Positions 28,169 to 44,102 of a stretch of DNA of 64,000 bases are shown piece after piece. Below the pieces are notes generated by a model that searched no databases, was not told the origin of the DNA, and saw only the letters and a program-made list of their open reading frames with translations. Made by a program: the position numbers and the translations under genes. The first letter of the stretch is position 1; the number at the start of each line of letters is the position of its first letter. Source of the DNA: Tubulanus polymorphus (lineage: Eukaryota > Animalia > Nemertea); the NCBI RefSeq assembly GCF_964204645.1, contig NC_134031.1, positions 17,925,910 through 17,989,909 of the forward strand, written 5' to 3'.

Positions 28169-30052
28169 CTAATTCAACTTCATATTATATAAGGACGTTA
28201 AAGTTTTTTGGCTTTTCTTCAATGTAATCGTCGATTTCGCTGATTTTGCTTTCGGTTTAACACCGCCGCCGATTACGGCAGTATTTCTCCGTATAAACGA
28301 TGAATGTCCGCCGAGTCCGTCGTATCCGACGCGTTTTTTCGACTCGTATCTATTCGAATTCGCCGGTTTCAAAATGTTATAACTGTAAATATCCGGTAAC
28401 GAGACTTCGTCGTCGTCGTCGGCGCGTGGACGTTTTCTCGGAGCCGCCGCGGTACTACGTTCCGAGTCGGGAGAAAACATATCCGCGCTCGACGAGTCCA
28501 AGTCGATCGTCAATTTCGGAGCCGATTTCGTCGTTCGTAAAGTTTTCGGCGTATCGTCCAAGCAAATGACCGAATCGTCGAGTTTCAGCGCGGAAAACGC
28601 GACGCTACGAGTCGACATCGATGATTTATCGGCGACTTTTTCCTGAGTGGGAGTCGATTTCATGAGGTAGAATTTCATACGCTGCTCAAGGTCGGCGATC
28701 TTATCATCGCGATCTTTAAGTTTCTGCTTGCAGTTGAGCAATCTGAGATTGTAATCCTTCAGAGTTCGTTTTTGTCCGTCGCGCAGTTCCTTGAATTTCA
28801 CGAGTTCTCGTTTCAACGCGACGACGTACGTGCACATTTGTTTCATTTTCGAATCGCCGTTCGCGTTTTTTTCGCTCAACAGTTCTTGAATTTCGGTCTC
28901 GCAACCTGGAACGGAAGACAAAACATTTTGGATCAGCGTTGAAAAATGCAGCTTCAGCTTCATCAGAACTTTTAATTGCGTAACCTTCATCAGGGTGGTC
29001 ACTTTTATTGACTTTTTCGATCTGACAAAACAATCTAATCAATTAAGGGCTTCGTTCGTCCAGGCTGACCAAGCCCTTAACCCTTTCAGTGCGTCAACAC
29101 CGCAGTGCAGTGTATGAATCTCAGTGCGTCAACACCGCAGTGCAGTGTATGAATCGGTGATGGATTTTGCTAGTACACTGCGGTGTATTGATGTAATTAG
29201 TTTTATCTCTATTGAAAGATGGCAGCACCTGTCAAACATAGTGAAATATTAGTAACTAACGATACACCGCGCCGTGGTGTAGAGGCACTATTATAGTGGT
29301 ATTCCCGTTATTCAACACACTAGGGTGGAATTTTTCAAAATTTTCAAATCATCTCCAGCACTGTAGGGTATTGATTAGTCAGCACTGAAAGGGTTAATTC
29401 AGTCAACATAAATAGGCGTACAAAGACTGTTTGATTTCACGCCCCATCTAGCTGTCTCGACAAATTTCCCTGATTTTTGTAAAGGAAAGTAAATTCCCCG
29501 ATTTCCAGGTAAGTGGCCACCCTGTTCATCTGCGTGAGCTAAGTCTCTACCTGTTAGAATAGTTCTGACATCTTTCAATTCTTGCATCGTCTGTTTCGCT
29601 TGATGAGCTTCTTGTTTCGCGACGTCCACGAGTTTCTGCTGCTCTTTCAGGAACCGCACCTGCCCGCGCAACGTTTTACTGACGGCCATTTCGTCGTTCA
29701 AAGACGCCGTCAATTGCAGCTTCTTCTGAGTCAACTCGACGACCTGCGCGCGCACGCCGCTCAGATCTTTTTCTTTCATACTCAACGACGCTTGCACCGA
29801 ATTGAGTTCGTTTCTCAACCGTCCGACGTCGCCGTCGCCGTTCGAACCGACGATCGAGTCGTCGTGATTATCGAAATATAGTTTTTTGATGAGTTCGTTC
29901 GTGCGAAACGGTTTACGACATTGCGGACATGTTTTTGATTGATTCACCCATTGATTCAGGCACCGTTGATGGAACGTATGTCCGCAGATGATCGCCGATA
30001 CTTCGGCGTTGTCCTCGTACGCTTCGCAGCATATGCTACAACCGATCTTCAT
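28169..30052 (-). CDS. TRAIP: E3 ubiquitin ligase TRAIP (exons 30052-29551, 28905-28169)
   Basis: N-terminal RING CSIC...CGHTFHQRCLNQW...KTCPQCR...KKLYFD, coiled coil, conserved GYDGLGG, and C-terminal PIP-like QKTLTSLY. Confidence 0.9.
29077..29397. mobile_element. piggyBac-type MITE (copy 4, internal ~35-bp tandem duplication)
   Basis: TTAA|CCCTTTCAGTGC...GCACTGAAAGGG|TTAA in the TRAIP intron. Confidence 0.9.
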
Positions 30053-30792
30053 CACGACGACGATTTCAGATCTGAAAATAACAAAAACATTCAATATTAA
30101 CAAAGCATATCAATCCAAAATGACGTAGATCGAGAAAGGGATTGATTAAGAAGCGAGGAAAGTAGCTGCAACAAGTAGGCCACCAGATAGGAAATGTGCC
30201 CACCGCCATCATTGCTCATATGGCCGGCAATAAATTTATAAGCACTTTACACGTTAATACTCAATCCAGCGATTAAGCAACACCAAATGATAGGCCTACA
30301 TCATATGCTTATACGCACACACAGAGCAAATTCTACACTAATATATTAGTAGCAGGTAAAAAAAATCCAGCTTTTGATGTTATGACATTTTCGACAGTGA
30401 GAAGTTTTTAAATTGAGTGCTATTCAATATGTCGTCACCGGTCGTCGCAAATCTATATATTATGCAGAATTATTAAGAAGGTTTTAGGGAGGGGTACGAC
30501 TACAGTACTACTCTACGAGTGAGTTTATGAATGGTGAAGTCTAAGAAGTCGAAGATTGAAATTCACTATTTTTTGTTCTAAAATTGCAACTTAACGTCCT
30601 TTGCCTATTTTGATTATTTCGATAATATGGTAGTGCTACTATTGACAATAACAGCAGAACTGCAAGTGACAACTTTGTCATCCAACATTTCTCTGTGTGT
30701 CTGTAAGAACTTTTTTGAAGGAGGTTTTTGTACAAAGTGGCTTGCGGGTTGGTCCCAGCTATGCCCCCTCCCCCCACCGCGACCAATTTCTG

Positions 30793-31360: not shown

Positions 31361-32185
31361 ATTCACTGTTGACTGTGTTGTGTGTGGATGAAGTGAATTT
31401 AGCCTAATTAATTAGTATTGATTCGAAAAAGGGAAATGTAAAAAAATGATCGTGACATTTGTCACAATTCCAGATTGCGAATCGGTTTTAAAGCGCCGAT
31501 GGATTGCTTATATGATTCTATTCAATGACAATGATTTCGATATCTCAGATTCACTCACCGGCTTCGATTCAGTTCTGATTTGGAATGATGTCTGTCTGCA
31601 GAGTTTCCAGAACCTGTCATGTCAGGTATCAAGACCTGTCATGTCAGGTCCCGAAAAAACCAAAACTCGCAACAATATTTGACGAAACGGCGAAATATCT
31701 AGGCATGTGCTAGACGAATGGAAGAACATTTTGAGTTGAATGAATATTCTGATCCGTCGTAAATATCGAAAATGATTCAACAATAACGATAAGGAAAATG
31801 TTCTGGCTAAATTCATTTGAAAGGTTGATTTATAAGAAGAAAATATTTATGTGTAAAATGATTTATTTCTGTATTAAAGGAAAAAAATAAGTTTCAGGCA
31901 TAGATGAATTAATTAATGTAGAAGTAAGGGAATATTTTCGATAGCTGAATCGAGGTCTTGATATTTCGTTTCCGCAATAAGACACTGAAAAATATCTGCT
32001 CACTATCACAGACACAGTTCGCCGGCATCACTCCTCACTGTCCTGAAGTCTCACTATTTATATTCATTGTTTTTATGATGTACATATAAAAAAGAGCCGA
32101 ATGCAATATAGAGACTGATTTTATTGAGACTGATTTTAAATCAACTCATCAATTTAAAGGTTTTTTTTCTATTTATATCAGTTTT

Positions 32186-32483
32186 AATGCAGACCTGTCA
32201 CCACAGCCACAGGTCGCGAGAAATTCTGCAAAATGGCGCGAGCTGCCGTGTGGAGGTCTCGCTTCAAAATTATTGTTTTATAGTAACTTAAGATTTAATC
32301 TATCTATGGTAAGCAATTGATATTATACTCATTACTACAATGAGACCAAAAGAATTCAAGTTTTCCTTCATTTCATCACTCAGTTTTATAATGCAGACCT
32401 GTCACCACAGGTCTCGAGAAGCTCTGAAAAATGGCGCGAGCTGCCGTGTGAGGTCTCGCTTCAAAATTATTGTTCTATAGTTA
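32186..32483. repeat. Direct duplication of a ~100-bp GC-rich segment
   Basis: TAATGCAGACCTGTCACCACAG...AAAATGGCGCGAGCTGCCGTGTG...GGTCTCGCTTCAAAATTATTG at ~32186 and ~32389. Confidence 0.85.
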
Positions 32484-32491
32484 CTTGGGAT

Positions 32492-33144
32492 TTCACCCAG
32501 TCCTGAGAATGGCCGGTTCGCGAAGCTCCGTATACTGCCTATACTAAAGAGCTCGCGTGAACCACCCACCCAGTCACGTAGTCGTTATTTTACTTCGAAA
32601 TTGCCGACTGGCGCTCAGTCGGCACTTTAACCACTCGGTCCTCGGCAACTACTCATCCGATTTCAATAAATAAACTACCTACACTGACCTTATGTTGTTA
32701 TCTTTTCATTGTTTACACCCCAAAGAATATATTTGAAGTTCAAGTGGCTGGAAATTGCCTCTATAAATATTTTAGTACCGCTTTTGTTTTACTAAAAACG
32801 GGTTCCTCGCGAGACTCACCCGCATGAAAAAATCAATATCTTAGCAACACAACAATAGATACCGCTTTGCGCGACTCGTGGATATTTGACAAGTCATGAA
32901 AAATCGTTTCATACACAAAATACGATGACAAAATGACTAAATAAACACAACAGTAAGAACAAGAAAGATCAGAGGTTTGCAATGATGGTTTATTTTTTGA
33001 AATCGGATGAATGAGAGCTGAGTAGTGATGATGTAATTAGAGTTGAATTAAAAAGAATTTAAAATCGCCGCGTATATGGCTTCCGCGACTTAGTGTCAGG
33101 GGTCGCGTTAGCGATATACCACTGGCACTAAGGTTCTCAGTGAA
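32492..33144. mobile_element. Non-autonomous DNA transposon with 8-10-bp TSD (long form)
   Basis: TTCACCCAG ... CTCAGTGAA with CTTGGGAT duplicated on both sides. A 121-bp form with the same ends lies at 44394-44514. Confidence 0.8.
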
Positions 33145-33642
33145 CTTGGGATTAACTATATCCATGGTTAGAAATTTATTTTTATGGCCTTAAAGTTCCA
33201 CGATATTGTTCAGCTGGCTACTGGCGTGTATTCAACCCGGCAGAAGTAGAACCTTTTCATTCAACTTCTATAAGCTCTCAAATGTAAATCCATTCATTCT
33301 TCAACAATAGAGACACAAATTGCGGCTTTTCAGGGTTGTTGATATCATTCATACGCGCTATTGAGTACGTCACGCTATTGAATACGTCACCGGCTGGCCA
33401 CGGTGTACACAAGCATAGGCCATTCACCTCTGCACACTCACACTGTGAACATGCTACCGTGGATTCTCCTCCTGGCGATTTTCGCTGCGCTCCCGCTCCT
33501 GCTCCTGTTCCTGCTTCCTGAGGAACGACGTCTTTATGTTTTATGTGTTACTGTTTGTCTCTGTGCTGTCCTGTACTGTTCCGTGTTTATTAATCCGTTC
33601 TTTTTTTCAGGGCCGATTTCTCTGTCGAATTTCAACGTTTGC

Positions 33643-34419
33643 TGGAACAAAACTAATGTCCAAAAGCGTCAGCTCTCCTTCGCTGGTCATGTGTCGAGGA
33701 TGTCAGACAAAGAGTTGGTCAGGAAATTCTGCCCTCTACACGCCCTCATACGGAACACGAAAACTAGGATGACGAGGCCTCACTGCCCCCACCTATCTAC
33801 AAAGTGTGCTGAGTGATGTCAATGACGGGCATATCTGTGGGATTGCGCGGGATACAAATGGAGTGGTTATACTGGATTGTCACGCTACTAGCATTCATTG
33901 TGTCCTTGTGACCGCCCGGATGAGGGATGATTCTACTGTCACGCTCTTTGTTTCTGGTATTCTGAGTCGGCTGAGGGATGATTCTACTGTCACGCTCTTT
34001 GATTTCTAGTTTGAGTGCTAGTTTTCATTGTGTCCTTGTGACAACCTCGGTCAGTGGATGAAGTCTCTCGTCAGCTTGTGAGTGCTAGTTTCATTGTGTC
34101 CTTGTGACAACCTCGGTCAGTGGATGAAGTCTCTTGTCACGCTTTTGGGTGCTAGTTGAGATCCTGAATCTCAACCCGGTCAAGCTGGTTGTACTGCGCC
34201 ATTTGTGTTTCGTGCAATTTTACAGGTGTGTCAGTTACTGACGTCGCCCAGTACATCCTGCAGTTAGATGGGGAATGTGAGGCGTCGTCATCCTGGTTTT
34301 CGCGTTCTGTGTGAGGGCGTGTAGAGGGCAGTATATTCCTGGCTGGCTCTTTGTCTGGTGTTCTGGGCATGTGACCGGCGACGGAGAGCTGTAAAGCTTT
34401 TGAACATTAGTTTTGTTCC
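33643..34419 (+). ncRNA. Candidate long hairpin RNA: inverted pair of RTE-like LINE 3'-end fragments with a structured loop
   Basis: 33643-33897 is the imperfect reverse complement of 34146-34419. The arms encode degenerate RQLSFAGH..RM.DKEPAR..ALYTPSHGTRKPG (non-LTR ORF2 C-terminus). Hand count of transition differences: ~32 G.U-compatible vs ~9 A.C-type on the + strand. Confidence 0.6.
33885..34156 (+). repeat. Tandem ~65-70-bp repeats in the hairpin loop
   Basis: CATTGTGTCCTTGTGAC x3, GAGGGATGATTCTACTGTCACGCTCTTTG x2, GACAACCTCGGTCAGTGGATGAAGTCTCT x2. Confidence 0.85.
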
Positions 34420-34932
34420 GTACCAGGTTTTCATCGCTCTTCTCTTTTTTTTCATTTCAGGACTCCCAAGATGAAGAAGAAGATGCTGAAGGCGACTACA
34501 GAAGATGCCGAAAAAAGAACACTGAACTCAGCAATATTGAAAGTTAAGTTGAAACACATGTAAATTACGATGTATGATACAGAAAGGATTGTGTAACTAC
34601 AGAATATCATTCTTTTGCTCATTTCAGCTAAACGTAATCTGGAAAGGCCCAGCTTGATATCAACCTAAAATCTACCCACCAGAAGTGACCACAAAAGACT
34701 CCACCTTGAATAAAGCAACCACCGAAAAACCTGCTGCAACCGAACCTGGCAGTCTTGACCTCATTCTGCATAAGCAACAGGAATGCATGCATAGCGGGAC
34801 ACAAAGCTAAGTTGATTTTTCGACTTGAATTAGGCCTACATTATTTTATTATATTATCTTGTTGTAATTTTCTAGTGTAATTTAATTCGTGAATAAAGAA
34901 TAATAATAAATAATACCTGGAGCAAAATGCAT

Positions 34933-35143
<211 letters not shown>

Positions 35144-35194
35144 TAAATATAAATAGATAATTAAGATGAAGATTGGTCAGTTATTAATTCAGAT

Positions 35195-37930
35195 TTTTGT
35201 AAGTACGTACAATTAAGATAAATTCATTATCTTATGTGACATTTGAAATTTTTCGAATGTACCGTAGATATTTCAGGCCTCATATGACTATTGTTTAACT
35301 GACAATCAAGATATAGAGATAGGACAATTTACTAATCAACCAATCGCTTAGATATTAGCAATCATTCAATATCTTATAATGTTTGATGAGAAATTTTTCT
35401 GGTGTAGATATTTTAGGGCCCCGTAAACATTTAGGCTGGCTTTACTCGTAAAGATATATATCAATTAAACTTTATCGTCGGTTAATAGATTTTTTTATGA
35501 ATAGTATATTGATACATTTATAAACATTCAGGCACTTTACAGTATATATTATGTACTGCTTTACCCATTGCGTTAATGAATTTCTCCGCAGAAAGATGTA
35601 TGAAATAGTGTCTAGGGCTCTATCGAGATCTGGTGTAATATGGGGAAAACTATGGACTGTGGATCTTTTAGAAACTATGATTACGTCTCGGCACTTCGAC
35701 AAATCTAGAATGAAACAAAGCTTAAATTGATCCAAATCATTCCCCAGAGCCATACTCTGTGCCTTGTTTTACGCTATGATTATTGATTAACTGACAATTA
35801 TCATATATATAGCTAGGACAAATTGCTCATTAACAAATGGCTTAGATATCCATAATTAAGATTCCACAATCAATATTTCATGTAAGATTAAAAACTATAT
35901 GTAATACAGGTCCATAATATATGTCGTTAAACTGACAATTTAAATATAGCTGATATATGTATGAGCACATCTGAATTAGTCTCATCGACTGATCAGTACT
36001 TGCATCTTAAACTGCCGTACTTACGGCGACTGGTCATGCTCTTCAATATTGCCAAAATTTACCGAAATCTAACTGATTCAAATAATATCTAAAAGCATTA
36101 CTGTGTGTCAAGTGACGCATAGTAGATATCGTTTAACTGACAATTAGAATATAGCTTGAATTACCCATTAACGTATTACTTAGATATCTACAATTAAGGT
36201 AAATTCATTTGTTATGTGAAAATATTTTTAATTCAGGTCCATGGACATTTAAAGCTGATACATGTGTATCTGAGCACATTTATTTGTATCTAGTGAACCT
36301 ATTGTGTCTTCATACAGCTGTATTAGTTTTGACACATATTGCCAAAATCATTTATCGCAGATTTACTTCCGATCGGAGGGAGATAAAACAAATCTGTGCA
36401 CAAATACATTCCTGAATTTGGAGGGGAGAATATTTCAATTTCACTGTGTATGTCAGATTGAGAGCCTTATTCTGACAGGATATCCTAAACTTATCTTATT
36501 CCTCTTGCTAATAGCTATCTTTTACTAACCCCTCTCCTTCAATCTATATTCCAGCATCATGACTCGCACCGCACTAGGGAGGTCCAGTCATAACAAGGTC
36601 TTTCGATCCTTATACACAGTGTACTGTAAAAGGGAAATAAAGATTATATAGCCATTCGGCTAAGGGAATTTCTAATTTACCACTAAAAATATGCTTTTTT
36701 ATCTTTAATTTCTGATGAATTCAAATAGTGACGAATTCACCACATCTGAAATTCTACTCATGTAGATTTTCAGGCTCCATATAAATATTGTTCAACTGAC
36801 AATTAAAATATAGCTAGTATGTAACTAATTAATGGTTCGCTTAGATACCTAGAATTTAATTAAAATTAATTCAATGTAATGAATATAAGTGAAACTTATT
36901 CAAAATTGCACAGTGGATGAGACGACTGTATCGCGCAATGTCATCTGCGTCTAACTGGGCCACGTGTGTGTGTGGGATCTGTTGAATCAGTTAGGTTTTG
37001 GGGGATTCTGGGTTAATTAAGCTAGGTATCAAAAGCTCTGATGCAAAATTAGCAGTTCAAATAGTGATTAATTCAAATTCGTACCGGATCTGAAATTCTT
37101 CTCGTGTAGAAATATCAAGCCCCATTTAAGATATTGTCCGAGACAATTTCAATTATAGCTAGGACATTATCAATTAACTTATTGATTAGGTATCTAATTC
37201 AGCATCTTCATATAAGGTAAAAGTGCTCAAATCTAAACCATAGGGGTTGATTAGACAACTGTATAATTTAATATTGATTGATAATATTGATTGATAGATA
37301 AAGAATACTGGGTATATTTTAACTCTGTCTCTTGTGCGTGGGATTTAATGAATCTTTAAGGCTTTGCAGAATTCTGGATTTGTCGAGTTGTGGGAATGAT
37401 TCGAGGTTTCTTAAATCTGTAGAACCATGTTACTTATAGGATCAGTGTGCTCAATGCTGGCAGCGCACTCACTCTTCAGTTAGTTACATTATCATAATTA
37501 CAAAATCATTGTATATATTAGGAGCAATATTTAGAATTAATGAAATGGATTAGAATACCATTCCCTGGGTACAGATGTCACCATCTGTGGGTAGAAAACA
37601 TCTCTTAAGTTTATTAACTGATGATGAAGTAAATTTGATAATACGAACATGGTTTAGCTGACAATCGGAATATATATAGGCCAATATTACTAGCAGGTTT
37701 GCACTGTATGATGGGCCTGGGTTTCAATAAAAGACACATCAAGAATTTCAAGAAGATAGAAGAGAAAACAGTTGAAAAACGATTTGATAAGATTGATTAT
37801 GAATTACTAAATTTGTTGTAACTCTGGTATTCCTAGAGATGTCTATAGATGCTTTAGTTGAATTGCTGTTAAACTATAATAATCAACCATTGCTTAGATA
37901 TTTAGAATATAGATGAATTACTATATGAGT
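35195..37930 (+). repeat. Degenerate ~150-bp module repeated ~7-9 times, with unique spacers between copies
   Basis: AACTGACAAT at 35297, 35789, 35930, 36135, 36794 (degenerate 37140, 37656). GTAGATATTTCAGGC-like at 35265, 35404, 36762, 37106, 39386. CTTAGATA at 35347, 35841, 36179, 36840, 37893. Confidence 0.75.
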
Positions 37931-38199
37931 TGAATTTCATAAATATCATTTATGACTATTATAAAAATCTACGTATCGATCCACATTGCTGATCTTATAT
38001 ATGAATTGACATGATAATTATGATCAGTGATATTCGAAAGGATTTTCTGCTCAAAAGGTTTTGCTCTTTTCTTCAGCTTGCCGTTTCAGACTGATTGGAA
38101 GATAGTTTGAATGAACCGGAATCGAATTTCCCAATTATGTAATTCGATTTAAGACATACTCGAGAAAAACTACAATAAACTTTAAAAAATTAGACAAAT

Positions 38200-38890
38200 T
38201 TAAACGGTGAAAATAACAAAAAAATTAAAGTTAGACAAAATTCTCCCACCTTGTAAACTTTCGGACTAGTTACATGAAAAAAAGACAAAATATTGTAAAA
38301 TATAGTTATTTCCAAAATCTCGATGTATTGAATTAGGCAGAAAAAAAAATAGATAAAATTATTCAACCTTGTAAACTTTCGGACTAGTTACATGAAAAAA
38401 AAAACCAAATATTGTAAAATATAGTTATTTCCAAAATCTCGATGTATTAAATTAGGCAGAAAAAAAATAGATAAAATTATTCAACCTTGTAAACTTTCGG
38501 ACTAGTTACATAGAAAAAAAGACCAAATATTGTAAAATATAGTTATTTCCAAAATCTCGATGTATTAAATTAGGCAGAAAAAAATAGATAAAATTATTCA
38601 ACCTTGTAAACTTTAGGACTAGTTACATGAAAAAAAACCAAATATTGTAAAATATAATTATTTCCCAAATCTCGATGTATTGAATTAGGCAGAAAAAAAG
38701 TTAACCCCAATCAGTCACTTAATATGTGCTTCGACTATTTAAACGGTGAAAACGACCAAATAAATTGAAGTTAGACAAAATTATTAAACATTGTAAACTT
38801 TCGGACTATTTACATTAAAAAAAGACCAAATATTGTAAATTTATCTTCAACAATAATATAGTTATTTCCAAAATCAGAATTAGGCAGAAT
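38200..38890. repeat. Minisatellite, ~118-bp unit x~5
   Basis: ACCTTGTAAACTTTCGGACTAGTTACAT at ~38248, 38367, 38484, 38601 and, degenerate, 38790. Confidence 0.92.
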
Positions 38891-39924
38891 AAAAGATTGT
38901 TTGAATGAACCGGAACCGAAATACCAATTATGTTCTTGGACTTAAAGAAAAAAGATCTGTAAAAACGACCGCCGATCACGCAACTATATCTGTACTTCGA
39001 TTTCCGATTTTGAAAAAAACCGCCGTATCGCTGCCGGCAGGTGTGGTAGGTTTGTAAGGGACACCAACTCGAAAAGTCAAACGAGAGCTTGAGGTCAACA
39101 ACTCATCAAAAATCTGCCAATTAGAGAAAACAGTGCACAGAAACCAACCGACTTAGGAGATCCTCGTCGATGATGAAACCGGCAATCATAAAAGGTAACT
39201 TGATATACATGGAGTTATAACGATGATTTCTAAATGTCGTGATTACAGGATATATTTATTTACTCATTGCAGCTAAGTTTCAACTATAAGAAAGAGACCA
39301 GCATAAAATCAACTACTCATCTGAAATCTACGGATTTGAACAACCCACAGAAGAATCAAACTCATTAGATGGAAATTACCGGTATATAGAAATTTCAGGC
39401 CTCATGAATATCATTTGATAAGTGATTATCATCGAAATCTATTTACCTGTCCACATGGCTGATCTTAGAACTTTTATCTTTACTAATCTTACACCTTGGA
39501 GTAATAAATTTTTCAAATGATTACTACAAGCTTAAACATTGATGAACTAGTCCTACTACTGTAATTATTTATTGGGGTTTAATTCGGCAATTGACGTCAA
39601 TGAACCTAATTCTGATTTTGGAAATAACTATGTTAACTAAGTAAAAAACACGGTGGCTTGTAATTTGAAATGACATGTAAGTTATGATAAATCTGTCTAA
39701 AATGTTTTGCTTTCTTCACTTTGTTTCAGTCAAACTACATCCCGGAAATAATGGCCTGAAGAAGACACAAGTAGACAAATACCCATTGACCCATTTGCTG
39801 ATGAAAACTGCAGAAGCCCAGATGAGAAGTTTAGGAGCCAGCGACAGATTAATCACTCAACGATGGAATCTTCTTCAATCGGTGGTTGATTTCTATAAAA
39901 CATTTTATCAGGAGCAGCAGAGAT

Positions 39925-40062
39925 GATAGTGTATCTTATGAAAACTGATTCGCGCAGCAAAGACAATGGATTATCTTATAAAATCTGATTCAGGATAAAC
40001 ACCGAAGCAGCAAAGACAATGGTTTATCTCATGAACACTGAGATCTAGCAGCGGCAAAGACC
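39925..40062. repeat. Short degenerate tandem repeat (~40-55 bp x3)
   Basis: TATCTTATGAAAACTGATTC...GCAGCAAAGACAATGG repeated. Confidence 0.6.
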
Positions 40063-41274
40063 TCTGTAGTAAAGTATTGATTTTTTTTACTAATATCACC
40101 CTTTTTCAGACCAGTCTGATAGGTAACATAGTTTAAAAAATTTACCTGATTGCGTGGAATAGAGTATGAAAATAGTTGTTGAGTCGAATATTGAAAATAG
40201 TTGGATAATTAGGTTCCTTTGGCCTGAGAAAGGAACTCTACGTTTGAATATTTCAATATAGAGAAAACTATTTTATAATGAGTTTGTAAAAAGATGTGTC
40301 ATGTGTTTTGCAATGTGACAGAAATATCCTTCTTAGAGTCTAATAAAAGCTAAGCTCCATTAATTCACGATATTGGTCTTCGATCTTAGGTTGATAGATA
40401 AGTTGAGTTGGTTAGTCACTAGGAGTATGGTCACGTCGAGCGCCTAGTTTTGCGTCGTAGGTCTGTTGAGTTAACGCCTAAACTGAGATATAGTTTCAAC
40501 ATGATATTGTAAGTTTTATTGTGCTTACCATAGTTAAACAGAGTCAATACAGTGGCTTTGCCCTGTAGATATCACACGGTTAGGAAACATAGAACATAAC
40601 GTTCTATGCACAAATAATAAGTATTTGCAGAATTGTAGATGTACTAATTTGATGGCATTGATATTTTCGAAGGCCCGTGTAACCAATTTGAGAAATGAAT
40701 TATATATTTCGATTTTCACATGGAGTTTTAACTTTGAGCCTCCATCAATCTGTTCGATGCTACGTATTTGAAAGCAAAAGTTTTATCTAAAAGGAGACCA
40801 TTATTTATATTTGAGAGGTAAAGCTAAAGTTATAGCTAGGACTAATTTTGAACGTTTTAACATTGTTTATAGCTGTTTGAACTTCTTTTATTGTAATGGG
40901 TAAATCCATATCACGAGATGGCTCTCGTGAATAATCACTTAGCTTCAAATCGGGTGTATAATGATTATTAAGGAGTGCCAGTGAATCAGTAGCGCTTTTT
41001 TAAAATGGGCCCAGAACTTTACAGTGAAAAAATGCCTGCAGTTGTAAATAGAGGAGTATAAATAATACATAACTACAAACTACAAGTACATAAATTAATT
41101 CTAAAAAATAAAAAAACCAATAAATAATAAATAGAATAAACAACAATACAAACAAACAACAAATTTATATTCTATTTACATGAAAAGGCATTTTTTCAAA
41201 TATTTATCAACAAGGTTCTTCATTTATCGAACAACCTTCCCTAAGTATAGCGAAAACCCGAGATCTTTTCTGTT

Positions 41275-41392
41275 GTTATTCAAAGCATTCTATCAACTCA
41301 GTTATTGTAATGAACAAAACAAATAACCATAAACCTTTACTAAATCGAAAACATTTAAAATAATAACTGATATGATAGAATGCTTTGAATAA
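41275..41392. mobile_element. Inverted-repeat element (MITE-like)
   Basis: GTTATTCAAAGCATTCTATCA ... TGATAGAATGCTTTGAATAAC, 21-bp inverted repeat. Confidence 0.65.
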
Positions 41393-41654
41393 CTGTGATG
41401 AAAGATCGACCCGTCCTTTCAACTAGCCGCGCTCAATCACTGCTGTGACTGTTTATTGTTATACATGGGTAAACTTACTATACATGGGTAAACTTACTAT
41501 CTAAAATCTGGTAAAAACAATTTTACTTTTTAGAAAGAATTCAAAACAGCTATAAACTTAAGTTATTGATGTTATTGATTAGTTACCGATTGTATAATTA
41601 TGTTGAAGCTGCCAGGAAAAACGTCAGAATACTTAGTATGTAATGTCAAGGTGT

Positions 41655-43450
41655 TTGGAAATCTTTAAGACAAGGCAAAGTTGGCAAAATTCTAGTTCTC
41701 TAGAGAAAGTAATGATTAATTGATACAAAGAGTTCCAGAGTGAATCTGAGTTTCTCATCTCTAGTTTTAATGCTTTTATGTTGGAGACTGTTATTGTAAC
41801 ACAGTTCGTGGGATAAAAGCTTCGAGACATAGAATTACACAAGCCCGGTGGATGAGTGATTATGATAACCTTCATGCCCTAATGAAAATATACTTGTCCC
41901 GCGCAGTTGGACTAGTGCTTAGATCAGACCCTGCTTTGTTTCAAATGTAGAATTTTTGAAAAAAGTAGTTGATAATGTTTGAAGAAATCTCTTAAAGACG
42001 AGGAAAATTTGGCAATATTTTTAGTTTTTTAGTAATAATTAAGATTAATTAGTTAACCTTGCGCTTTCCAGAGTGAGTGAATTTGTAGGTTTAATGTTTT
42101 TATTTTGAACTGTTTTAAAATAACTCATTAAGCCACCAGGGTATAATTGTTGTGCAAGAATAAAACGACAGACATGTTCGTCATTCATGTTAGAACTGTT
42201 CAATTGTTTAGTTACGTGTATTGCAACTGTTTTCCTGTGGTGCTCATCAATGGTTCATAAAATACTATTTTCATTAAGGCCCTTATGGAAAATAGAGGAG
42301 CAAAATAGAGGAGCAAAATAGAGGAGCAGTCTCTTGATAAATGAGGATATATGAACAGTGTTAATTAGCAGATTGTGCCAGCAATATATGGACTCTTAAA
42401 GACAAGGCAAAGGTGGCAAAACTCTTAGTTACCTTAAATTATATTAATTATCGTAAAATAATGTTGATGAAAATAAAATCAAAGACTGTTTAGTTAATCA
42501 TAAGCTTTCCAGTTTGAATTTGTGTTTTTATCTCTGGTTTTTATATTTTATGTTGGAGACTTTTTTGAAATACAGGTCATGTTGAAATGTCAAAATACAG
42601 GTCATGTCAAATGACTGGGGCACTTCCTCAAGTATATAAATACCTGTCATTTAGGTATGATTGTTGTTGCGGGGATAAAATGACACGTTCATGTCAATTG
42701 TTCATAAAACACTGATTTATTAAGGTCCTATCGAATAAAGTTGAGCTTTTTCTTGACAACTGAGATGTCCTCAATCTCGATGTCATTTGAAAAGTTGACG
42801 ATGATAGATTCATATTTCATGAAATATAACAAAGTGTCAGTTATATTGACCTCATGAATTGTCAAATTCATAATCTTAGACTTTAGGACCAGTCCTTTTT
42901 TTGGTGTTTTATGGATCAAAGTTTACAACTCTTTGTGTATTTTTGTTATTTTCCCATTGATGCAAATTGTATGAATCAGCTGTAGTGGAAATATATCATA
43001 TATACAGACTTATAAATACCTTACATGTAACTTTTGTGATTTTAAAGTTAGTACAATTTCATACATATAATAGAAATAAAATTGCTATTAAAATTTGAGA
43101 AAATAAGCTAAAAGTTAATAATTTGATATGTGAAAATAAAATGATGTAAAGAATTTAAATTATATTGATTATTCCTACGCTTTCCAGAGTATTTGGCCAG
43201 GTTTATCTCTGTTTTTAGTGCGGGGGCCATTGACAATTGAGTCCATGGTTGGGCCATAGACTTTTTTGTTTTAGAGTCTTATGTTTGGACCTAGGGGCGT
43301 ATAAACACTCATTTATAGTTTATACGCCTATGGTGGTTGGACTAGTTTTTGAAAGTCCACGTGTTTGAGGAGCTTACGTTATAATTCCTCGAGCAATCCT
43401 GGCATTTTGTATAATTGTTGTATGAGAATAAATATGATTTTGAAATTTGT
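41655..43450. repeat. Old tandem duplication, ~350-400-bp unit x~4
   Basis: Recurrent TAAAGACAAGGCAAAG.TGGCAAAA, TTCCAGAGT, TTTATGTTGGAGACT and GTATAATTGTTG in the same order at ~41660, 41990, 42393 and 43180. Confidence 0.6.
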
Positions 43451-43769
43451 CATTCGTTGAGTTAAGCAACAAGTGTTACTAAAACGAAGCACTACTAAAT
43501 AAAAAGACTATATGCACCAGAGAAAACCGACCAATTTACGTTTCACATGCATTTGTTTATATCAGGTATTGCCTACACTTATTAGCAGAGGTGGTTGAAT
43601 ACACAGATAGCACCCCTAGTGATGATTTCTAATGAGTGCAATAGCTCATCGGACTTCGTTTTAGTCATGCATAGTTCTTCTGTTAGTATTTTTTCCACTC
43701 AACACGCGCGGCCCGCCCTAATTGATATTAATCAGTAAACCACGGCACTCCCCAATCCGCCGTCACTGG

Positions 43770-43926
43770 GCCAAATTCGGTTTTCGTATCTAGTCGACTA
43801 GTGGTCTGAACTAATAACCGAATGCGCTTGACTTTCGAACTATTTCCGGAATATAGTTCCGACTAACGGAGATTCGGTTTCGTTTAGTTCGACTGTAGTC
43901 GACTTACTCCGATAACCGAAGGTGGC
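43770..43926. other. ~157-bp imperfect foldback (palindromic element)
   Basis: Nested pairs GCCA/TGGC, TTCGGTT/AACCGAA, AGTCGACTA/TAGTCGACT, GAACTAA/TTAGTTC, AACCGAAT/ATTCGGTT, GAACTAT/ATAGTTC. Confidence 0.75.
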
Positions 43927-44102
43927 GAAACGAAGCATGATTGACGCACCGTATCCACCGTCCTCGGCGTCGTAGTAGCGCTACGATCATGTACCCAACC
44001 ACGGTAACCCCAGATACTACGTTCTTGTAGTAAGTGGTTAAAGTTTAGTCGCGCGATCGGCGGATCCACAAACATACTAAGCCAAATATTCAAGCCCATC
44101 TC

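Follow-up and report, generated by a model that had tools for sequence, protein, structure and literature searches.

A hairpin module with strand-specific wobble pairing in a dispersed 10-kb repeat of the ribbon worm Tubulanus polymorphus

Introduction

Is a long imperfect inverted repeat in a ribbon worm chromosome kept as a folded molecule by selection, and does it form a gene of its own? The question was raised by positions 33643-34419 of a 64,000 nt stretch of Tubulanus polymorphus (NC_134031.1:17,925,910-17,989,909), here called the window; all coordinates are window positions. An initial annotation had read this segment as the decayed end of a LINE, domesticated at this locus as a structured RNA and possibly making siRNAs against its source family. 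Selection for RNA-type pairing can seldom be demonstrated from one genome. For this hairpin, a multi-copy family and a diverged sister lineage supplied the comparison.

Results

Arms, pairing and fold energy

Through a repeat search, we found three inverted segments: 33726-33861/34199-34334 (136 nt, 76%), 33670-33725/34336-34391 and 33644-33667/34396-34419. They are collinear, and gapped local alignment joined them into 218 pairs between a left arm (33644-33861, + strand) and a right arm (34199-34419, + strand) that is its reverse complement, with a G+T content of 64%. Arms of about 250 nt had been proposed; the 218 aligned pairs are real, and the weaker extension to 33897/34146 appeared in the fold only and was absent from the local alignment. 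The hairpin 33644-34419 is thus a long inverted repeat able to give intramolecular double-stranded RNA, as in the hairpin RNA (hpRNA) genes with which it had been compared.

On the + strand the stem comprises 170 Watson-Crick pairs, 30 G·U pairs, nine A·C mismatches and nine other mismatches, and 92% of the 218 positions are pairable when G·U is included. The excess of G·U over A·C (30 vs 9) was significant (binomial p=0.0011) and confirmed the earlier hand count of about 32 against about nine; when neighbouring sites were merged into runs, it was 22 vs 8 (p=0.016). The fold energies differed in the same sense. For 33643-34419, the minimum free energy (MFE) as RNA was -435.9 kcal/mol for the + strand (z=-31) and -325.0 kcal/mol for the - strand (z=-16).

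Copy number and the 10-kb repeat unit

The 861 bases spanning the hairpin occurred at least 40 times in the genome with 97-98% identity, on all large contigs. A 29-mer present twice per copy gave 202 genome matches, and a 20-mer common to both arms gave 301, among them solo arms and hairpins whose loops differ in length; from these two counts we estimated about 100-150 copies of the hairpin module. Fifty of the 53 copies listed sit within 3.5 Mb of a contig end. A single-copy domesticated gene was ruled out by this copy number, and the idea of one domesticated retroelement locus gave way to that of a module in a dispersed 10-kb repeat. The hairpin in the window is one ordinary, slightly degenerate copy of this module of about 0.8 kb.

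The whole repeat unit in the window extends from 33170 to 43450 on the + strand (about 10.3 kb), with the hairpin near its left end and no long ORF. Other copies reach 265-465 bp further left, and the left ends vary. An AATAAA signal is located at 43427-43432, about 20 nt from the right end. The hairpin lies in a conserved 5' module (33400-34500, + strand) with an identity of at least 0.96.

Origin of the wobble bias

Changes among copies were polarised by the family-majority states. The majority sequence gave the same census as the window copy (170/30/9/9), and G·U exceeded A·C in 50 of 50 copies; therefore, the bias is older than the amplification. Stem transitions among copies were balanced, with 64 of the C>T and A>G types and 66 of the G>A and T>C types, and the flanks of the same repeat unit showed no G+T skew (0.50 and 0.48). 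The changes after amplification were mildly biased, with 53 from Watson-Crick to G·U and 33 from Watson-Crick to A·C, like the flank asymmetry of 79 vs 64.

Two mutational sources of the genomic G·U sites were rejected by their neighbouring bases. A 5' G precedes 11 of the 30 G·U guanines (37%), which is unlike the ADAR context, and an ADAR imprint misfits for this reason. CpG decay was rejected because TpG stood at the background frequency.

Compensation and the sister lineage

A sister lineage to the main family is represented by two diverged copies, L047 and L060. The stem of L047 is 9.9% off the majority and that of L060 13.9%, with Watson-Crick/G·U/A·C counts of 167/26/10 and 169/25/6, respectively, vs 170/30/9 in the majority reference. 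Double changes that preserve pairing numbered six in L047 (0.94 expected; reached in 1 of 5000 permutations) and nine in L060 (1.71 expected; 0 of 5000). They included C-G to A-T double transversions and a change from T·T to G-C. Among the one-sided differences between the sister lineage and the majority, 27 were between Watson-Crick and G·U and ten between Watson-Crick and A·C (p=0.008), so the wobble asymmetry recurs independently in this lineage.

Across the 50 copies, 13 double changes were counted in the true register vs one to six in 16 shifted registers. RNAalifold recovered the same stem for the main family with just two strictly compensated pairs and a covariation term of -2.5 kcal/mol; one compensated pair, 33662/34401 (G-C to A-U), is private to the window copy. 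Since covariation within the main family is thin, the compensation signal comes mainly from the two related diverged copies. The results support a stem maintained as a structure under selection. Of the proposed domesticated structured RNA, the selected and strand-specific structure stood, through compensation and G·U asymmetry, and the single gene did not.

The central region

The central region or "loop" (33862-34198, + strand) is composed of direct-repeat modules: motifs of the TGTCACGCT type four to five times, GTGTCCTTGTGAC three times and a 66-nt unit 2.2 times, all in direct orientation. It also contains the 8-bp mini-hairpin (34155-34175) that had been noticed in the one large bulge; this element is seen in the MFE fold and is invariant in 45 copies. 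The centre is the best-conserved sequence of the hairpin module, with 0.086 singletons per site vs 0.30 in the stem (about 0.30 for the left arm, 50 copies) and 0.34-0.46 in the flanks. At the border of arm and centre the singletons fall sharply, from 28 to six per 70 nt. In the sister lineage, the centre (337 nt) has diverged by 1.5-3.3% vs 11-23% for the flanks. As an independent structure the centre was rejected, its own fold being no better than shuffles (z=-1.7 for the + strand, +0.6 for the - strand). The centre is conserved as primary sequence and the arms as pairing.

History of the 5' module

Between copies, the hairpin distance stayed near 0.024 at all flank distances (Mantel r=0.15). 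Right-flank subfamilies could be told apart only beyond about 34500, where the between/within ratio was 2.3-3.3; to the left it was 1.0-1.3. The flat distance and this break indicate that the 5' module has a star-like history, independent of the repeat-body subfamilies, and is joined to diverged bodies. Either recent spread or homogenisation would account for it, and part of the uniformity of the hairpin may reflect one of these processes and not purifying selection. We also asked whether the hairpin had inserted recently into older units. This was rejected, as the break in history lies near 34500 and not at the arm ends, and the left edge is not sharp, which reflects an aberrant left side in the window copy itself.

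Gene-like signals around the hairpin

An exon-1-like segment (33451-33536, + strand) starts with ATG and gives a hydrophobic, signal-peptide-like reading; its length varies among copies by hexamer repeats. Pfam returned only weak transmembrane-type noise for this reading, and no conserved ORF runs on from it. An acceptor-like signal of polypyrimidine and CAG follows at 33599-33610 (+ strand), in tandem duplicate in most other copies. To the right of the hairpin there is a GTTCC|GTACCAGG junction at 34420, and GTACCAGG is retained in 47 of 50 copies. It opens a 41-nt GT...polypyrimidine...AG stretch (34420-34460, + strand) that adjoins the right arm, with the pyrimidine tract and AG conserved. 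Judged from these motifs, it may be a mini-intron, or a longer intron may have its 3' end here. Next comes an acidic exon-like segment (34461-34542, + strand; 75-89 nt across copies), then a conserved GTTAAGT donor, an 85-nt intron-like stretch and another acceptor.

The acceptor and donor proposed to flank the hairpin both exist and are kept in most copies. However, the whole block around these splice-like signals is conserved, and their own conservation is thus no proof of use. The length of exon 2 differs by non-multiples of three, its frame is not conserved and most copies contain stops. A secreted-protein gene carrying the hairpin within its first intron was ruled out by these frame-breaking lengths and stops. 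The repeat unit thus has the look of a gene but is non-coding or pseudogenic. An Rfam search of 32500-44000 returned nothing significant.

LINE origin and possible targets of the arms

The arms had been assigned to the ORF2 C-terminus of an RTE-like element, and this assignment was not supported. Each arm retains LINE-like stretches of just 20-25 codons or so per frame, in two frames, with the left arm running in the LINE-like sense; such stretches are too short for a significant database search. The arm translations had no match in Pfam. A tblastx search of the arms against 360 kb of retrieved DNA found no independent LINE, and all hits led back to the repeat family. A codon-degenerate motif pattern had no match in the genome, and patterns of recombinant states matched family copies alone. 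No LINE relative was found among the 301 matches of the shared arm 20-mer, a search that more diverged copies may have escaped.

The source family had been suggested as a possible siRNA target, with intact LINE targets to be sought in the genome. Neither the 301 matches of the 20-mer nor the 360 kb revealed such a target. Three unpaired arm matches were examined and all were repeat-family members. No trans target of the arms was found, as the examined arm matches were family hairpins or truncated family copies.

Contigs from sequencing runs

None of the sequencing runs on record as RNA contains the hairpin stretch, and no small-RNA run turned up in the search. Matching contigs came from runs of unspecified type and individual, designated X1, X2 and X4. 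The X4 contigs date from 2014, when transcriptomes of Tubulanus polymorphus were appearing, and cover only 33408-34700. Five stem positions that are A on the + strand read G in both X2 and X4: 33799, 34217, 34241, 34262 and 34266. Of 50 genomic copies, A is present in 46, 50, 50, 43 and 49, respectively. X1 showed no G at four of these sites, and at 34262 G made up about 4% of its depth. The remaining listed differences in the runs were ordinary copy variants. Sequence context at the five sites is uninformative for editing. The G readings may represent either A-to-I RNA editing or a lineage-wide fixed difference.

Discussion

Interpretation of the hairpin module

We lean, by a modest degree, towards the view that the hairpin is a selected structured RNA module on the sense strand of a gene-like, multi-copy repeat, with the stem kept for pairing and the centre as the payload. 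The stem of about 220 bp would be kept by selection for pairing in a single-stranded molecule of the + strand. Under such selection wobble pairs build up on the + strand and A·C mismatches do not. The molecule would most likely be a sense transcript, because it is the + strand that carries splice-like and poly(A) signals. The long stem would scaffold, protect or delimit the conserved centre, and the centre might bind proteins in a multivalent fashion or be a processed RNA. Copy number, structure, strand bias, compensation and conservation pattern were observed; we infer that the molecule is RNA, that it would have a binding partner and that its function would serve either the repeat family or the host.

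We might speculate further that about 100-150 dispersed, subtelomere-biased loci encode an undescribed structured ncRNA of about 0.8 kb, with a 220-bp G·U-rich stem and a conserved 340-nt motif array, expressed from the + strand and A-to-I edited in vivo. It would be a new class of host RNA or a cis-acting core for the spread and homogenisation of the repeat. This extended proposal is doubtful.

Several other explanations were weighed. The hairpin might be an hpRNA or endo-siRNA locus, with a + transcript that folds into long dsRNA and is processed by Dicer to 21-22-nt siRNAs silencing either a related retroelement or the very repeat family that holds it. Any long dsRNA could serve Dicer as a substrate, and an imperfect, G·U-rich stem of about 220 bp lies here on the strand with gene-like signals. 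Drosophila hpRNA loci such as hp-CG4068 and hp-ODox2 are long imperfect inverted repeats as well, and can be spliced, multi-copy and made from a Jockey LINE fragment (PMC10317233). In the fly as in the worm, the inverted repeat lies within one transcription-unit-like context. However, the defining features of the Drosophila loci are Dicer-2-dependent siRNAs and complementarity of the arms to a target; the worm hairpin is known from genomic sequence, and every arm match examined, the 360 kb included, belonged to the family. Its copies are dispersed on all large contigs and not clustered. Its arms drift by 10-14% and its centre is kept, a pattern contrary to the prediction for target-matching siRNA arms with a free loop. 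A role in siRNA production is unproven and not favoured, and we regard this explanation as improbable. A DNA-level element has also been considered, in which single-stranded DNA or a cruciform serves as a signal for recombination, gene conversion or replication. A single-stranded DNA hairpin tolerating G·T on the exposed strand would yield the same strand bias, the star-like history breaks from the flanks near 34500, and diversity is lowest at the symmetry centre, as it would be if breaks at the palindrome had induced homogenisation around it. Yet conversion between copies explains neither the strand-specific G·U excess nor the compensated pairs that end as G·U instead of as perfect complements. 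The diversity drop at the arm/centre border is abrupt and not a smooth gradient, and the gene-like signals of the + strand are left unaccounted for. We give this explanation little credence.

A neutral relic would be an inverted duplication of a retroelement fragment, its bias being produced by transcription-coupled asymmetry, CpG decay or reverse-transcribed A-to-I editing. The family does look like a young burst (about 2.4% pairwise distance, variable left ends), the flanks carry a mild asymmetry in the same direction and the stem holds possible A>G editing sites. Against this stand the compensated doubles, far above chance both among the 50 copies and in the sister lineage, the symmetric mutation input of the stem, the unskewed flanks, the frequent 5' G, the background level of TpG and the strongly conserved centre. 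The neutral reading is already disfavoured by these observations, and we consider it very unlikely.

Comparison with other repeat-derived and intronic RNAs

A selected sense-strand RNA module would differ in several ways from known systems. Compared with Drosophila hpRNAs, the worm module conserves the sequence of its centre rather than that of its arms.

Paired Alu elements in primate transcripts are inverted-repeat substrates of ADAR and represent chance juxtapositions without selection for pairing. The worm hairpin shares with them a long intramolecular duplex of repeat-derived arms, and there are five A>G stem differences on the + strand of X2 and X4. Its stem, however, is compensated, and its genomic G·U sites do not carry the ADAR neighbour signature.

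Host genes of snoRNAs and of stable intronic RNAs are non-coding hosts of intron-encoded RNAs. The repeat unit resembles them in its conserved splice signals, in exons without a conserved ORF and in having its best-conserved sequence between splice-like signals. In contrast, the worm element has neither an Rfam match nor the canonical C/D or H/ACA organisation, and is far larger than snoRNA-type RNAs (about 780 nt with a 220-bp stem).

Long inverted repeats in many copies are also characteristic of fold-back and MITE transposons. But the worm inverted repeat is internal, and homology extends past it to the left and right in every copy. The hairpin is bordered by neither terminal repeats nor target duplications in the copies compared.

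Significance

For this window the result is deflating, since the locus is an ordinary, partly decayed copy. If the RNA is real, it would be an abundant and unexplored structured RNA family in Spiralia, for which we know of hardly any functional annotation of non-coding RNA. It would also exemplify a repeat-borne hairpin retained because of its structure and loop, and not because of siRNA arms. The star-like history of the 5' module, uncoupled from that of the repeat body, is relevant to the way in which dispersed repeats become homogenised.

Other features of the repeat unit and its surroundings

Within the same 10-kb repeat unit, the region 35195-37930 is present in other copies with 71-96% identity to the window copy, depending on the subfamily. 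A (TA)n microsatellite of 229 bp occupies 34931-35159. Four tandem A/T-rich units of 118 bp, 94% alike, are found at 38232-38699 and also occur in copies L031 and L032. A 17-bp tandem duplication at 33356-33390, on the left side of the conserved module, is limited to the window copy.

To the left of the repeat unit, copies L014 and L024 regain homology to the window (31583-32492) about 50 nt beyond their equivalent of 33170, so that the window copy seems to hold about 640-700 extra bases (32475-33169). In the X1 and X2 contigs, joints from 32493-32618 to 33089-33340 leave out about 485-846 bases. The segment 32387-32473 is a separate repeat of very high copy number, with a summed X1 contig depth of 34555, far above its neighbours. 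Further upstream and outside the 10-kb repeat unit, a 234-aa ORF (29399-30103, - strand) has a coiled-coil-like region after its RING-type zinc finger and resembles an exon of a TRAIP-type E3 ligase.
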